Origin: Octopus bimaculoides
Taxonomy: Eukaryota
DNA length: 64,000 nt
Direction: 5' to 3'
Assembly (NCBI RefSeq): GCF_001194135.2
Contig: NC_068989.1
Span: 56,254,518 to 56,318,517, forward strand
Shown: positions 26,108 through 47,600 of the stretch, piece after piece
How positions within the stretch are numbered: position 1 is the first letter of the stretch
Layout: each line of letters begins with the position of its first letter
Translations under genes and position numbers: made by a program
The notes under the pieces: model-generated
What the model was told of the DNA's origin: nothing
Seen by the model: the letters and a program-made list of their open reading frames with translations, nothing else
The model's database searches: none

Positions 26108-28577
26108 TGCATACATACACACAGACACATACACTGATCAAAAGTACATGCTAGTGATGCAAAAAGCATAAAGCATGCTTATTGAAGAAATGTGGTGAAT
26201 AACTAGAAAACTAGAGGAGGGTACCTTGGATGATATCATGGATAGACAGAGAACTGGTTTTTCTCAAAGCATGACATGTCAAGTTACTGCCAGGAAATCT
26301 AATTGCCTGAAGTGGGAGAAAATTTTAAATGGAACTAAAAAGTGAGGAAGACAGGAAACTAAAGTTTTTAAAAAAGAAAATAGAAGTGTGAAGATTGTGT
26401 CTATGATGTCACAGAGCCCTGTCTCTTTCTTATTGTGCCACACCAAAACTAAACATAGAAAAATGTTTACATTCAATGGGAGTGATTGTTCTACTTCTAA
26501 GCATCTAACATTTTCCTCCCACCAAGACGGTGTACTGATGGACATAGTGATAATGATGATGATGATGAGAAAGATGCTGATAATGATGCAAACAAGGAAA
26601 ACATAACTAATTATTAATGCACTATACACTTTGATCTCTCTGCAGACGGAATATAGGTATTCTTTCCCTGATGACAGTCTAAAAGACTAGAAACTAGTTA
26701 GACCGAGCCCATATTTTCTGCTCATGGAAAGATTAAGTCTTGTGATGTAACAATTTGTTTTACTTTTTAGAGAGAGATTAAAATTGTATATTTACCAAAA
26801 AAGAAAATATCTTATATTAAAATTGCAATTATCCAAAAACACTTTATAGTGCATAATTAAATAATTAATTAGAGTAACTTTTTTTCGTGGGATTTTTGTT
26901 TTTGTCTTGTTTTTTGTTTTTCCAATAATTTCTAAAAAAGATGAGATAGTACTATACATGATTACCACTAACTAGAAATTTATAAGAACTTTATCATAGT
27001 TTTAGGGGGGAAAAAATTAAATTATATATATTTATATATGTGAACCCTTTGTATCCTTTTCATACTCTTAAGATTTTGCATTCAAATTTCTAATCCCACC
27101 TCACACTGTGAGAAAACAGTTACCTCCCATCGTATTAAATGCCATCCAGAGAGTATCACTCATGTATGATAAAAATAATTCTCAGTTAATATTCAAGTGT
27201 TACAATGGATAATCTGATGAGCAGTTGGTTTCTCAACTGAAGTGTCTTGTGACTTTCTACCATCTCCACCCATTAGGTTTCTGCTTCTGCTGTTGACTGT
27301 CGATGATGACAACGACGACGACAATGATGATGACGATGACAGTGAAGACATTGCTGTGTCTTTGATAATAAACATGCAACACAATCTCTTATCTCATTAC
27401 TTACCTGACAATGCAACAGGCAAGAAAAGGAGAGAACAACTTGAAAACAAAAAAACAAAATAACTGAAGACTCACAGGAAATAGAAAACATTTCCTAATT
27501 TTCTGAGGAACCATTTCAGGAAGAAAGTGGACAAAATGGTTTCAGTGAGTCATTGATTTATAAGATTACCAAATAGTAATTTTTGTATATTGTATTAATA
27601 TTACATATGAATATCTATATGTACATATGTATAAATATTTGTATTTGTGTGTATGTTCATATCCATTCAATGGTGCATATTTAACTGATGATATATTTGT
27701 TGGTGGTAGGGGAAAGAAGATAAAATGCAGTTCTGGAGATGCATTCTTGAGTTAAAACTGTGATGTTAGGGTTTTCAATGTATGTGTCTTGGGTGTAGCC
27801 AGAGCTATAGAATAAAATGTCTCATAAGTTCAAAATATATGTATGTGTTACTATATTTGAACAGGTAATGATGAGAATTAAGAAATAAGGAGAGAAGAAT
27901 CCTCTTCATATACTCCTTAAATTCTTTAAAGTGTTTCAGTTTTAAAGCTGCGGTCATGCTGGGGCACTACTGTTGGCTGGGCTACACCATTATTTGAAAA
28001 TGCCTCTGATATGTGGCATTTGATGAATGAGGGAGTTTGATGATGCTGCCCTCATTTGTGCTTCCTGCCGTGAAGTAGGCTCATCCGGAAACTTGACAGG
28101 AGGAGATCCAGTTTTGTTTGGAAGACACCTACATCCACACCATGCAAATCGCTCAGGCATTTTGAAAGGATATTGAAGAGCTGTATGCCCTTGAAACCCA
28201 AGGTGTTGCAGTATCTGCTCTGTATTTTGATGGTGACGCTGGAATCTTTGGCACTATACATGTGTGAGTGAACTTGTGTGTGAGTCTGTGTGCATGCATG
28301 CATGTGTGTGTGTGTGTGTGTGTGTGTATTTACACTGAATAATATTTTAACTATTAATTTCTCCTTTCAGTTTTTAAGGATTCAATGAGTTCTCGATATT
28401 ATTGCTTCTACAAAAGAGTGTGTGTGGGTGTGTGGGTGTGTGAATGCATGTGGTTCATATGCATATAAATACATGTATATCTTACATGATACATTTTCAA
28501 AGCCATGCTACAGCACAGCCACAGTCCACTGGCTTGAACATATATAAAGAGTATGTACATACACACATAAACAAATA

Positions 28578-41675: not shown

Positions 41676-44600
41676 ATGTTTGTGCGTAAATATGTATTGG
41701 GCACTTTTTTGAATTCCATATGTCTTAACAATCGTAGACATGCTTACAGAATCCAAAAAAACAACACAGCACCCATGACTTTCGAAAACATTTTTTTCAC
41801 ACCTGGAATTGCTGAAGCATGGAATAAACTACCTGCATCAGTTGTTAACTGTCAGAACACTACATCCTTCAAAACCTTCACGCTTTTTGAAATTTGCTAA
41901 CAGTATACCTGATGCTCCACCCCAACCCCCATCTTTATAATTTTTTTTTTTAAACAATTCATTCACTGTTCACTTCCTGTGCATTATTCTATGTAGTGTT
42001 CATGTAGTTTTGACTACTTTTTTCTGATGAGTTGTTGCATACCTGAGCATTGTATACAATAAGTTTATTATATTATTATTTATTATCCTTCACTGATGCT
42101 TAAATCTTTTGTCAATCTCTATATCTTTCATTGAAGGTTATATTTTTTCCAAAGTATAGATCCTTCACAAGTATGTTTATATATTTTTTCTTATTGTGAA
42201 AGACGTTTTGCTTAAGTCCTTAAAATAAATAGCGATTTTACGAAGGGAGGTAACATTTCCCACCTCACATAAAATATAAAGGGAGATAATATTTAAAAGA
42301 AATTTATTTTTAAAAATTCTTTAAAAAAAATTAATAAATTTAGTAAAGTGTTTAGCAGAGTGGAAAGTCAACTATTAAAATTATTTTAATACAGTTCTAT
42401 ATTTAAGAGATGAGGAATTATGTACATTATTTACAATTGACGGATATTTATCCTCATCTTGTTTGTTGTTGACACAACGTTTCAGCTAATATACCGTCCA
42501 GCCTTCATCAGGTGTTTTGGGGAAATTTTGAACCTGGGTTCTCATTCTTAAGGTATTTTTCGATGTTATTATTATTATTATTATTATTCAGGTCACTGCC
42601 TGGAATTGAACTTGGAATCTTGGGGTTAGTAGCTCGTGCTCTTAACCACTATACCATATGCCCACAAGCATATGGCATAGTTTTCTATAGTTAGCTAATT
42701 CTGAGTCCCAAATGTATTTTAACTTTTTAATTATAAAAAAATGGACTGATTGAATGTGCTGCAAAACAAAACAAGAAAACAATAATTAAATAAACTTATA
42801 AAAAGAAAGAAGAAAACACTGAAAAAATACCATTTAAAATTGGCCCAGGGAAAAAAATGTATTTAAACTGTATTAGAGAAATAGATTTCTGCTATTTGCC
42901 CCAAGGACATAAAAGAAAAACAGTATAAACACTTACACACACTTACACAAACATGGTAGGATAATTACATGAAATATAAATACGGAAATATAAATAAAAT
43001 TCCTTTCTGGAATGGTAGATCTTGAAGCAGACAAAATTATAAATAATAGCATGAACGTATTGGGTTAAAAAATCCTTTGGATAAAAATGTTGAAGGCTGC
43101 ATGAAGTTTCTAAATTCTTATGGCAACAACATAAAAATCTTGCTGGTAAGAATGAAGCTTCTAAAATTATTTTGTTTTGAATTAACTGAAATCCTCCAAT
43201 ACATTAAATTGTACACGATATTAAATGAAGAACGAAGCACAAAAATCAATAATGGCAGTTAATATATATCCAGAGATTCAAACAATATCCAAAGTTTGTT
43301 CCATCTTTAATGGAGAATGGATCCTCATCATCATTATCATTTAACGTCCATTGTCCATACTGGCATGGGTTGGACGGTTTGACCAGGGCTGGTAAGCTGA
43401 GAGGCCGCACCAGACTTTAGTCTGATTCGGCATGGTTTCTACAACTGGATGCCCTTCCTAACGCCAATCACTCCAAGAGTATATATAAAAAGGTAAACGA
43501 TTTTAAGAAAACAAAAAGGAACTCCAAAATTTTCTACCTTAGAATTTAGTTTTTGATTGCGAATACAAGCAGCCAAAATGAGGTTCCTCTGAAGGGTCTC
43601 CAGAGTATGTAGCCTGGAGATCAGGAAGCCTCTCCAGACTAAGCTGCTACTTCTCTGCATTGAGATCACAGCTCTTGTATTACAGACATATAATTAGAAT
43701 GTTTCAGGAAAGAATCTCATGACAGGTTTTTCAAGCTGAGCTAACTGGCAGGAGACTTAGGGATAGACCACAAACGAGATGGTTGGATAACATCCATAAT
43801 CTCAGTTGGTTATGCTTTGGAATCCAGCCAGAAAGTCTAATGGGGACTGCTTCAGGCAGGACCATATTGAAGAGGTGCCTGGAGACTCTAATCCCATGAC
43901 TGTCCCAAGAATAGTAGATGGATGGATGGATTATTAATATGTATTTGGGGAGAAAATGTCAGTTTTGAAAAGTTCAGAATATCAAGACATGAAGTTGGAG
44001 TTTTTCAAAAATAGAATGTTCTTGCAAAATCTCAATTGAAAGAATGGTAAAAAAGGAAGAATTTTTGAAAATGCTGAACTGAAAGAATGGTAAAAAAAGG
44101 AAGAATTTTTGAAAATGCTGAACTGAAAGAATAGTAAAAAGGAAGAATTTTTTAAAAATCTGAACTGAAAGAGTGGTAAAAAAAAAGGAGGAATTTTTAC
44201 TTACCGTTGAATGACCTCATCTGATGTAAGACCTTTGCAATCATGGAAGAATATCAAAGATGTATCTTCTTCCAATCCTCTGAGAAATAAAATGAGAAGT
44301 GAGAAATATATGTTACATAAAATCCTGTTTTCTTAGACAACACTAAAACTCCCGCCAACATTAACTATGCTTTTAATACAGTATGCCCATAATTGACGTT
44401 ATCTCGGGACAAATATTGCAATAAGCTGGCCTATCAATGGTGTATCCATGTAGTGTATATACATTACACTACATGGATGGATATTATAACTAGTGCACTT
44501 TTCCTGAATGGTAAGTTTTACTATGAAAGGACACTACAATTGATGTTTCAATGAACCGTTTCTTCTCGAATAGTGTACTACAAGATGACAAAACGCAAAA

Positions 44601-47600
44601 ATATTTTCTTCCTATTTGGTGTTTGGGAAGTGACAAGACTGACTGATGCAAAGAAAAACTGATGCTGAAATAATAGTAAAAAGGGTATTCCAGATAACCC
44701 ACAATAATTAAAGTGGATTTTATGATGGCACTGGAACTAGAAAAGTTAAACCCACTACTACAGCTACACTAAAGGATCCACTTTCCTCTGTGTCCTCCCT
44801 GCTTTATTGTTCATCATTTTACTGGTGCATTTTGTCACGGCACAACAATAGTAACGTTTCTTTCTGCACTGTATAATTTAAACCGTATCCAACTGCCCAA
44901 TACAACATGACTGAGAGGGTAAATTCAATGTAGGATTTGAAATCAAGACCATCATTCTGGCAATGTGATACTATATCTTGACATGTTACTTTGTGAACAA
45001 GTTTTGATTGTAAACTATTACATTGTAAGGGAAAAAAAGAGAAAAAAAGGGGCAGAAATAAAGCATCATCACCAAAAATATCTCAGAATCTTACCTTAGT
45101 TTTCTATAGTTACCTAATTCTGAGTCCCAAATGTATTTTAACTTTTTAATTACAATAAACTGGACTGATTGAATGTGCTGCAAAACAAAACAAAGAAAAC
45201 AATAATGAAATAAACTAATTAAAAGAAAGAAGAAAATACTGAAAAAATACCATTTAAAATTGGCCCAAGGAAAAAAGTGTATTTAAACTGTATTAGAGAA
45301 ATAGATTTCTACAATTTGCCCCAAGGACATAAAAGAATAACAGTATAAACACTTACACACACTTACACAAACATGGTAGGATAATTACATTAAATATAGA
45401 TACGGAAATATAAATAAAATTCCTTTCCGGAATGGTAGATCTTGAAGCAGGCAAAACTATAAATAATAGCATGAACGTATTGGGTTAAAAAATCCTTTGG
45501 ATAAAAATGTTGAAGGCTGCCTGGAGTTTCTAAATTCTTATGGCAACAACATAAAAATCTTGCTGGCAAGAATGAAGTTTCTACAGTGGAGAAATTCAAA
45601 GGATTGCTTTGGGCCATTGGTACAACAGCCGTCATGTCTAGAGGAGATGTGGGTGCAAATCCCACAAGCAGCCTTTGACTTTTTCTATCAAAAGAGGATT
45701 TTTTAACCAAATATTTACATATTATTTATTTATAGCTTTGTCTGCTTCAAGATCCACCACTCAAAAATAGAATTATTTAATGTTCTCTCAAAGTTTATCA
45801 ATTTTTATGACATCAACTATACATAAAAATATAATCCAAAATAAAAAAAATTAGTATATGTGTGACATGTGAGATACCAATTGCAATACCTATACATATA
45901 GATATATAACCTGGATAATTGTATAATCAATGCTTATATTTCTGCTATTAGTTTCACCATAATTTGGTTCTTCACATAACACTTTGTAATCTGCCTAATT
46001 AAAATGAACAATGCAAATAGAAGGTGGATTATGAAGCATTGCCTGAAGAACAAAAGTGTGGTGAAACTAACAATAGTAATATTTAAAGAAAAAAAACCTG
46101 GCACTCCATCGGTTACAACAGGGGTTCCATTTCATCTGATCAATGGAACAGCCTTCTCGTGAAATTAACATGCAAGTGGTTAAACACTCCACGAACATAT
46201 GTACACTAAACATAGTTCTCAAGGAGATTCAGCATGACACAGAATGTGACAAAGCTGGGCCCTTTGAAATACAGGTACTACTCATTTTTACCAGCTGAGT
46301 GGACTGGAGCAATGTGAAATAAAGTGTCTTGCTCAAGGATGAAATGCACTGCCAGGAATTGAACACACAGCCTTACAATAGCGAGTCAAATACCCTTACC
46401 ACTAAGACACGTGCTTTCACTAGGTAATGTAACAAAGGATTATCCAACAAATAGGAGAGAGAGAGAGCAAGAGAAAGAAGGGGAGAGAAAAGGGAGAGGT
46501 GGACAGACAGATGGATGGACCAACAGACAGACAGGTAGGCAGGCATGCAGACAGGCAGACAGACAGACATGGAGAGATACATGAAATGCTCAGGTTGTGT
46601 ACGCATACCGATTGTTCCATGGCTGTATCTTGTAAATATGCAGCAGTGGAAAGTTTGCCTTTATAAATGGAAAAAGATGCATCTGCAAGTTTGATAAGTT
46701 GGGTGCTGTGAAGGAAAGAGAAAAAGAAATGAGGTAATTTCAATAAACACAACAGATTTAAAGAGTCAAGTTTTAATACAATTTAACAAGTTATTATAGC
46801 AGTATTTCCATTTGTGTGCCATAAAGGGAGACAGGTGTAGGGGTGATATTTTTCTCAAAGAAATTAGAAATGTGTTGTTGCCCTGTCAGAAGATTTTCCA
46901 CTAAAGCCCATATATCAATAGTATAAACTACAGAAATTCAAATGAAATTTCATATTATCACAGAAAAAGCAAGATTTTTGGTTTTCATTTTACAATAAAT
47001 TATTTACTATTGAACACTGGTATTTATTGTTTACTAGCAGAAATACCCGGCGTTGCCCGGGTTAAAGAGAATAATGAAATCTAAAAACGCCGTCTAGACT
47101 ACGCATCATCTTTATATATAGAGATGTATATACACACACGCACCCAAACACACGTATATATATGTATATCAATATAAATATATGAAAGTCAATGAAGTTT
47201 CGTAAAAGAAGGTGATCATGTACATACTTTCTTGCTGTTGTGATTATAACACCTCATTGTAAACTATGTTCCTTGTTTTCCCTTGTGGAGCATATACAAA
47301 TAGGTTTTTTGTTGCTGCCCACTCTTGAGCAGCCAACATNNNNNNNNNNNNNNNNNNNNNNNNNNNNNNNNNNNNNNNNNNNNNNNNNNNNNNNNNNNNN
47401 NNNNNNNNNNNNNNNNNNNNNNNNNNNNNNNNNNNNNNNNNNNNNNNNNNNNNNNNNNNNNNNNNNNNNNNNNNNNNNNNNNNNNNNNNNNNNNNNNNNN
47501 NNNNNNNNNNNNNNNNNNNNNNNNNNNNNNNNNNNNNNNNNNNNNNNNNNNNNNNNNNNNNNNNNNNNNNNNNNNNNNNNNNNNNNNNNNNNNNNNNNNN

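Follow-up and report, generated by a model that had tools for sequence, protein, structure and literature searches.

A duplicated exon joined to a SINE-like element in an ATP13A2/3-like gene of Octopus bimaculoides: a candidate template-switching retro-insertion

We analysed a stretch of 64,000 nucleotides from Octopus bimaculoides (NCBI RefSeq assembly GCF_001194135.2, contig NC_068989.1, positions 56,254,518 to 56,318,517; hereafter the window, with position 1 as its first letter). Its minus strand carries a gene that, judged by its predicted product, is a P5B-type ATPase, a polyamine pump of the ATP13A2/3 kind. Intron 6 of this gene contains a second copy of exon 5 together with part of intron 4. 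On its 3' side (gene sense), the copy is adjoined by a short interspersed element (SINE)-like unit of ~290 nt in the same orientation (bounds read from a single copy in the window), and a short direct repeat brackets the two together. Whether copy and element arose as one chimeric retro-insertion, by template switching onto the host pre-mRNA, is in our judgement about evenly balanced.

The host gene and the duplicated block

Exons were mapped from position 46705 downstream in gene sense, and the numbering that makes the duplicated one "exon 5" is that of an earlier sequence-only reading of this DNA (Table 1). Joined together, exons 4-8 keep an open frame with AG/GT borders and encode a peptide of 153 residues that matches the P5B-ATPase of PDB entry 7op5 (E 4e-17) and human ATP13A2 (7m5v; E 6e-15, query residues 32-153, all of exon 5 included). 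The part encoded by exons 6-7 is recognised by Pfam Cation_ATPase_N (21.9 bits against a cut-off of 20.4). Because the ATP13A2 alignment spans all of exon 5, this is a genuine and conserved coding exon, and the ATPase gene itself looks intact.

Table 1. Features of the exon 5 copy, the adjoining element and the surrounding exons (window positions; a slash marks a splice or cleavage site)
Feature	Position	Strand	Remarks
Exon 4	46609-46705	minus	97 nt
Source block	45097-45583	minus	3' end of intron 4 and exon 5; found by blastn
Exon 5, authentic	45095-45177	minus	83 nt; donor AAG/GTAAGA
Exon 6	44205-44279	minus	75 nt
5' copy of putative target-site duplication	43164-43173	minus	AAAATAATTT (gene sense); abuts first base of the duplicated block
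Intron 4 copy, last 405 nt	42759-43163	minus	polypyrimidine tract and AG acceptor; 19/405 differences, one of them a gap
Exon 5 copy	42676-42758	minus	42678-42758 (81 nt) certain; 42677-42676 match 1/2 exon bases
Hypothetical pseudo-exon	42655-42758	minus	104 nt, phase 0 to 2; cryptic donor ATG/GTATAG in element A box
Inverted arm	42669-42681	minus	ACTATGCCATATG (gene sense); reverse complement of element nt ~3-15 at 12/13
Loop or filler	42661-42668	minus	CTTGTGGG, 8 nt between the fold-back arms
tRNA-type SINE head	42590-42663	minus	RNA polymerase III A and B boxes, 44 nt apart
A box	42656-42646	minus	TGGTATAGTGG
B box	42612-42602	minus	AGTTCAATTCC
Internal microsatellite	42566-42588	minus	(TAA)7
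Minimal hammerhead-like motif	42472-42515	minus	predicted cleavage between 42476 and 42475
3'-proximal stem-loop	42409-42458	minus	8-bp stem GATGAGGA...TCCTCATC
Element 3' end	42388-42408	minus	...CTCTTAAATATAGAACTGTATT; no poly(A)
3' copy of putative target-site duplication	42378-42387	minus	AAAATAATTT; directly after ...GAACTGTATT
Exon 7	41502-41571	minus	70 nt
Exon 8	38411-38545	minus	135 nt; encodes P5B hallmark segment

The sequence-only reading had described a block of ~486 bp with exon 5 and its acceptor, copied 2.4 kb away to between exons 6 and 7. A blastn comparison of 42600-43300 with 45020-45720 bears this out: 42678-43163 and 45097-45583 lie on the same strand and are identical at 464 of 487 columns (95.3%, one gap), at an offset of 2419-2420 bp. 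A self-comparison of the whole window showed these to be its closest long repeat pair, the other pairs of at least 120 nt being 75-93% identical and belonging to dispersed repeat families. The block is therefore a recent local duplication and not two transposon copies. The copied content consists of the last 405 nt of intron 4 and 81 nt of exon 5 (486 nt), and it sits in intron 6. A longer copy, split by a later insertion in the source, was considered and rejected, as there is no homology beyond 43163/45583.

The exon 5 acceptor is unchanged in the copy (TTTTGCAG/CAC). At the other end, unbroken homology stops at ...AGAAAACTA (...AAAACTA), 2 nt before the end of exon 5. The next two bases are TG in the copy and AG in the exon; allowing one mismatch (CTAAG against CTATG), the copy reaches the last exon base at 42676. 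The claim that the copy stops exactly at the splice donor thus holds in that it ends near the exon end, but only to a precision of 0-2 nt. No intron 5 sequence is present in the copy. The 3.5 kb upstream contain three donors, and we roughly estimate at ~0.4% the chance that a breakpoint placed at random lies within +/-2 nt of one of them.

A separate observation concerns intron 4, where 45418-45774 forms a fold-back with arms at about 45433-45525 and 45665-45759 (~81% complementary) and a loop of ~140 nt, part of which (GTGGGTGCAAATCCCAC) resembles a tRNA T arm. Of the two arms, the duplicated block includes one (at 43013-43103) before it stops in the loop.

The element and its junctions

The copy and the element are bracketed together by an exact 10-nt direct repeat, AAAATAATTT, which encloses 776 nt (43163-42388). 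Such a target-site duplication was not part of the sequence-only reading and is new in this analysis. In the 1.6 kb downstream of its 5' copy AAAATAATTT recurs once, and the match grows to 12 nt when the TA that follows on both sides is counted (43162-43163 at the 5' copy). Over the matching distance range in the window, chance recurrence is 1.2% for AT-only non-simple 10-mers and 0.3% for 12-mers. We take the repeat as a probable mark of a single target-primed insertion. Two other ways of delimiting the insert were rejected. If it ended at the (TAA)7 microsatellite, only a displaced 6-nt match would be found there, against the exact 10-mer at the position chosen; capture by a Helitron or a transposon with terminal inverted repeats does not suit its ends, which lack both such repeats and the 5'-TC...CTRR-3' pattern.

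The element begins with a tRNA-type head, continues through the microsatellite and closes with a tail of ~178 nt that ends ...GAACTGTATT. Two further SINE copies in the window have heads that can be aligned with this one, and the B-box region is 17/18 identical to another family there. Neither Rfam nor ARAGORN matched a tRNA at the element head, and neither a pseudo-long terminal repeat (pseudo-LTR) pair nor a 30-40 bp tail was seen at the element. The head, the (TAA)7 stretch and the hammerhead-like part described below may belong to a single element, or they may derive from two RNAs that were linked when the template was switched once more, as happens in tripartite chimeras (PMC2104539).

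Other SINE-like sequences occur nearby. A repeat of ~165 nt (...CATACTGGCATGGGTTGGACGGTTTGACC...) is found at 43321-43490 and at least eight other sites of the window, with 76-89% identity; the insertion site has one copy 150 nt to its 5' side. On the minus strand, 31335-31410 is tRNA-like (29.8 bits against an Rfam gathering score of 29, without an ARAGORN call); it probably represents a further SINE head or the remains of a tRNA that has decayed.

The minimal hammerhead-like motif reads ACAC-CUGAUGA-A-GGCUGG(ACGGUAUA)UUAGCU-GAAA-CG-U-U/GUGU. Its catalytic boxes (CUGAUGA ... GAAA-CG-U-U, 42511-42476) fit CUGANGA, GAAA, U16.1 and an H17 that is not G. Helix II has 6 bp (three of them G-U) with one unpaired A after A9, helix I has 4 bp (ACAC with GUGU), helix III is absent, and 15.2/16.2 is a palindromic CG. 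In the minimal hammerheads of Penelope-like elements, an unpaired nucleotide lies between A9 and 10.1, helix II has 6-8 bp and helix I 4-5 bp, helix III is missing, 15.2/16.2 is palindromic and the G10.1-C11.1 pair is highly conserved; most of these motifs are single and probably mark truncated Penelope-like elements, and SINE is a keyword of the paper that describes them (Cervera & de la Pena 2014; PMC4209133). A minimal-hammerhead descriptor, drawn up after the site had been seen, matched once in the window, at 42511, and once in 150 second-order Markov simulations of the window (mean 0.007 per window). The motif would link the element to the Penelope-like group. A looser core (CTGANGA...GAAAC) was discarded, with five matches against 0.77 expected, of which only 42511 passes the full descriptor. 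A canonical hammerhead ribozyme was likewise dropped for want of an Rfam match and the minimal motif kept. Elsewhere in the window, 26668-26694 on the plus strand (CTGATGACAGTCTAAAAGACTAGAAAC) has hammerhead core boxes around a 5-bp hairpin and fails both the minimal descriptor and all Rfam models.

Where the copy meets the element, the sequence in gene sense is ...AGAAA-ACTA-TGCCATATG-CTTGTGGG-CATATGGTATAGT-GG.... The inverted arm ACTATGCCATATG can pair with CATATGGTATAGT (42669-42681 with 42648-42660, complementary at 12/13), and the GGG of the intervening CTTGTGGG probably represents the first bases of the element. RNAfold places an 11-bp hairpin here. Hairpins of this type occur at only eight loci in the 64 kb, and one lying exactly at the junction is therefore not due to chance. 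The junction with an inverted 5' end of the element, as first read from the letters, is in this way supported by the arms, the 8-nt loop and the predicted fold. The TAG microhomology noted at the same place is also present, but it is 4 nt and not 3 nt long (ACTA in gene sense, TAGT on the plus strand), being common to the start of the arm and the end of the exon 5 homology. A CATATG palindrome here would help the strand to snap back. Two other SINE heads in the window start near the GGGCATATGG position, which weakly suggests that the native SINE head lacks the inverted arm; these two heads are, however, of different families from the element at the copy.

Origin of the composite

What is directly seen at the locus, namely the duplication, the same-sense order with the captured piece 5' and the element 3', the fold-back, both microhomologies and the direct repeat around the whole composite, argues for one target-primed insertion with a change of template. 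Retroelement template switching had been offered as the origin in the sequence-only reading, and the shared orientation, the position of the captured piece, the fold-back with microhomology and the 10-nt duplication all speak for it. An endonuclease would have nicked the plus strand of intron 6 after ...ATTATTTT, leaving a T-rich end to serve as primer, in the manner of target-primed reverse transcription. A reverse transcriptase would then have copied the SINE-like RNA of ~290 nt from its 3' to its 5' end, where the cDNA may have folded back on the CATATG palindrome over ~13 nt. From there it would have jumped, by way of the 4-nt microhomology (ACTA/TAGT), to the 3' end of exon 5 in the unspliced transcript of the host and copied 486 nt back into intron 4, before the cDNA end was joined to the upstream target through a 2-nt microhomology (TA). 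The site before insertion would read ...CAAAACAAAATAATTTTAATAGTTG... (also ...TTCAAAACAAAATAATTTTAATAGTTGAC...), with one AAAATAATTT only. The identity of the copying enzyme is an inferred part of this proposal.

The nature of the second template can be narrowed a little. That the breakpoint lies at an exon end and that intron 4 sequence is retained suggests a host pre-mRNA, and the closeness of source and target suggests that this was a nascent transcript. The best candidate for this template, which we nevertheless put forward as doubtful, is a splicing intermediate. Once intron 5 had gone through the first step of splicing, exon 5 would have a free 3' end while intron 4 was still attached to it, on a nascent transcript trailing ~1-2 kb behind the polymerase at the place where the element was being integrated. 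A free exon 5 of this kind would explain why the breakpoint is at the splice donor and why the landing site is local.

Several points weigh against a chimeric retro-insertion as set out above, or against parts of it. The flanking repeat is short and AT-only, with a chance near 1%. blastn and nhmmer detected no second copy of the element within the 64-kb window, only matches to the microsatellite and an 18-nt stretch at the B box. A protein search with the peptide of exons 4-7, exact ORF look-ups over both junction regions and two pattern scans of metagenomes also returned no match. The element contains no open reading frame (ORF), and no reverse transcriptase or GIY-YIG gene could be tied to it. 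The Rfam hammerhead models (type I/II/III, HH9 and HH10) gave no match in the window at the gathering score, in 41500-43300 at E<=10 or over the full 64 kb at E<=5. The hammerhead-like motif also has a G-U pair at 10.1/11.1, a departure from the conserved G10.1-C11.1 that possibly reflects C>T decay of a CpG (C11.1-G12). The earlier label of a ribozyme element accordingly stands only for the fit to the minimal Penelope-type architecture, without an Rfam model and without G10.1-C11.1. Free 5' exons are short-lived and held in the spliceosome, which makes them an a priori unlikely template. A DNA template copied during repair would also give the same sequence. Taken together, the proposed history is coherent but unproven and concerns a single locus, and we hold it with moderate confidence.

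The breakpoint near the donor would also be expected if splicing came before retrotransposition, through cis- or trans-splicing of the exon 5 donor to a cryptic acceptor just upstream of a sense copy of the element; the chimeric RNA, still keeping part of intron 4, would then have served as one template. SVA exon trapping and human mRNA/LINE-1 (long interspersed element 1) 5' chimeras follow this route, and exons ending at donors are known from the latter (6/17; 10.1101/2025.02.02.635956); a target-site duplication around the composite fits this order of events equally well. A processed chimeric RNA should land anywhere, however, and the composite here lies in the gene of its source exon, with the same sense and at a distance of 2.4 kb. 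The 64 kb contain no source copy of the element, although they take in ~41 kb of the gene past the insertion; splicing would not be expected to leave a fold-back and 4 nt of microhomology at the junction; and the last two exon bases are TG and not AG. We consider this order of events rather improbable.

Purely DNA-level events leave similar traces. Microhomology-mediated template switching in replication or break repair, of the fork stalling and template switching or microhomology-mediated break-induced replication type (FoSTeS/MMBIR), or filler capture at the break made by the element, would be in keeping with microhomology at both junctions (4 nt and 2 nt), with a source only 2.4 kb away and with the retained intron sequence, and the product cannot distinguish an RNA from a DNA template. 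The breakpoint beside the splice donor would then be a coincidence: its position 0-2 nt from the exon end (~0.4% by the estimate above) and the shared orientation of copy and element (50% by chance) are left unexplained. Replicative switching alone makes no flanking direct repeat, whereas capture at the integration break of the element would permit one. On balance a DNA-level origin seems unlikely to us. It is hardly credible that the duplication is an artefact in which two alleles of one region were placed in series by the assembly. Complex inverted and tandem structures do cause misassemblies in the literature on Penelope-like elements (PMC8557442). Against this, the two copies differ at 23/487 columns (4.7%), each has unique flanks on both sides, one end of the block is a structured retroelement junction and the other abuts the target-site duplication, and the stretch that was read contains no Ns.

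A chimeric retro-insertion by template switching would have several relatives among known systems. Template-switch chimeras carry the other RNA on the 5' side and the element 3', in the same sense (10.1101/2025.02.02.635956; PMC2104539). The octopus composite resembles U6/LINE-1 and other bi- or tripartite chimeric retrocopies in being flanked as a whole by a target-site duplication and in having microhomology or filler at the internal junction. It differs from them in its second template, which would be a piece of unspliced RNA from the target gene itself and not an abundant small RNA or mRNA, and in its element, a SINE-like unit from a mollusc with a hammerhead motif and no poly(A). In human mRNA/LINE-1 chimeras, 6/17 captured exons end precisely at donors, and some continue into the first 10 bp of the element where no acceptor is visible (10.1101/2025.02.02.635956). 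A host exon that ends at its donor and is joined to the 5' end of an element is thus common to our composite, human mRNA/LINE-1 5' chimeras and SVA exon trapping. The human and SVA cases concern spliced first exons that landed elsewhere in the genome, whereas here an internal exon with 405 nt of retained upstream intron was placed 2.4 kb away in the same gene.

Insertions of Penelope-like elements show target-site duplications of 8-10 bp, 5' palindromes that have been read as self-priming, microhomology at 5' junctions and capture of intron-containing host genes (PMC3846280; PMC8557442). The 10-nt duplication, the 13-nt fold-back, the 486 nt of host sequence and the hammerhead motif are all reminiscent of these insertions, including the mobilisation of host genes in Adineta vaga. 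Unlike Penelope-like elements, the octopus element has no pseudo-LTR pair, no reverse transcriptase/GIY-YIG ORF and no 30-40 bp tail; its inverted piece measures 13 nt and is not a long 5'-truncated copy, and the host fragment lies upstream of the element and not between two repeats. Schistosome Sm-alpha is a short non-autonomous unit with an RNA polymerase III A/B-box head and a canonical, active type I hammerhead. If the octopus unit is one element, it too would combine an A/B-box head with a candidate hammerhead motif in a short unit; the motif here is minimal, predicted and has G10.1-U11.1.

Exon duplication is usually ascribed to tandem duplication at the DNA level. As in tandem duplications that give mutually exclusive exons, the ATPase gene has acquired a second exon copy with an acceptor; here, by contrast, the copy is dispersed, out of order (after exon 6), without a donor and with no sign of constraint. 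Chimeric retro-insertions are a known kind of event, and this one is unusual in its captured RNA, which would come unspliced from the host gene, and in its outcome, an intragenic exon duplication. If this history is true, a retroelement can, on insertion, use the unspliced RNA of the host gene as template and place a copy of a nearby exon, along with intron and acceptor, in a downstream intron. This would be an RNA-mediated route to intragenic exon duplication and a ready source of decoy or alternative exons in intron- and retroelement-rich genomes such as those of cephalopods. The breakpoint at the donor would then record, as few sequences do, either a splicing intermediate or splicing into a retroelement; in the former case, it would be a fossil of retrotransposition meeting co-transcriptional splicing.

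The copy as an exon, and other repeats of the gene

The copy keeps the acceptor of exon 5 and has lost its donor. We recomputed the splicing outcomes proposed in the sequence-only reading and obtained the same values. Read on to the cryptic donor in the element, the copy forms a 104-nt exon (42758-42655) of phase 0 to 2 with its acceptor kept; joining exon 4 through the copy to exon 7 preserves the frame and gives 18 codons fewer than exons 5 and 6 (158 nt) do, and inclusion after exon 6 causes a frameshift, with a stop 13 codons past the junction. All four exonic changes are nonsynonymous, as had been noted (Q6H, I8F, V9I and G22A). This had been taken to fit neutral drift; the observation is true but carries no weight, the probability being 0.39 under neutrality. 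The exon part differs at 4/81 positions (with 0/4 changes synonymous) and the intron part at 19/405. Because the copy has diverged at the same rate as the surrounding intron, we regard a neutral pseudo-exon as its most likely state, one that is silent or now and then harmful and that at worst acts as an occasional decoy shifting the frame.

A working alternative exon, used from exon 4 through the copy to exon 7 to give an in-frame isoform 18 residues shorter, strikes us as very unlikely. Its acceptor and polypyrimidine tract are intact, the frame stays open over 34 codons and re-enters exon 7 in frame, and by a simple consensus count the donor ATG/GTATAG is no worse than the gene's own exon 4 donor (TCG/GTATGC). 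Equal divergence of exon and intron and the lack of synonymous changes nevertheless give no sign of constraint, and two constitutive exons would have to be skipped. The isoform would lose the exon 6 segment that matches Pfam Cation_ATPase_N and replace it with the eight element-derived residues CHMLVGIC. Its alignment to ATP13A2, which no longer extends upstream of exon 7, shrinks from query residues 32-153 to 68-135 and scores 49.6 bits, down from 58.9.

The introns of the ATPase gene contain further repeats. In intron 6, a unit of 43-44 nt (AAAAAGGAAGAATTTTTGAAAATGCTGAACTGAAAGAATGGT) is repeated four times in tandem at 44007-44198, a few bases from the exon 6 donor (85-94% alike). The same intron holds two fragments on the plus strand, antisense to the gene (41631-41900 and 43560-43930), that by eye resemble the 3' end of a non-LTR retrotransposon ORF. 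In intron 7, four to six tRNA-like SINE units are piled head-to-tail at 38600-40330 with a spacing of 207-268 nt, the last unit lying 482-750 nt on. These units end in (ATT)n, as if they had inserted into one another's microsatellite tails. Finally, the next-closest repeat pair in the window after the exon 5 block is a second local direct duplication, of 123 nt and 92.7% identity, at 35468-35590 and 36866-36988, 1.4 kb apart.

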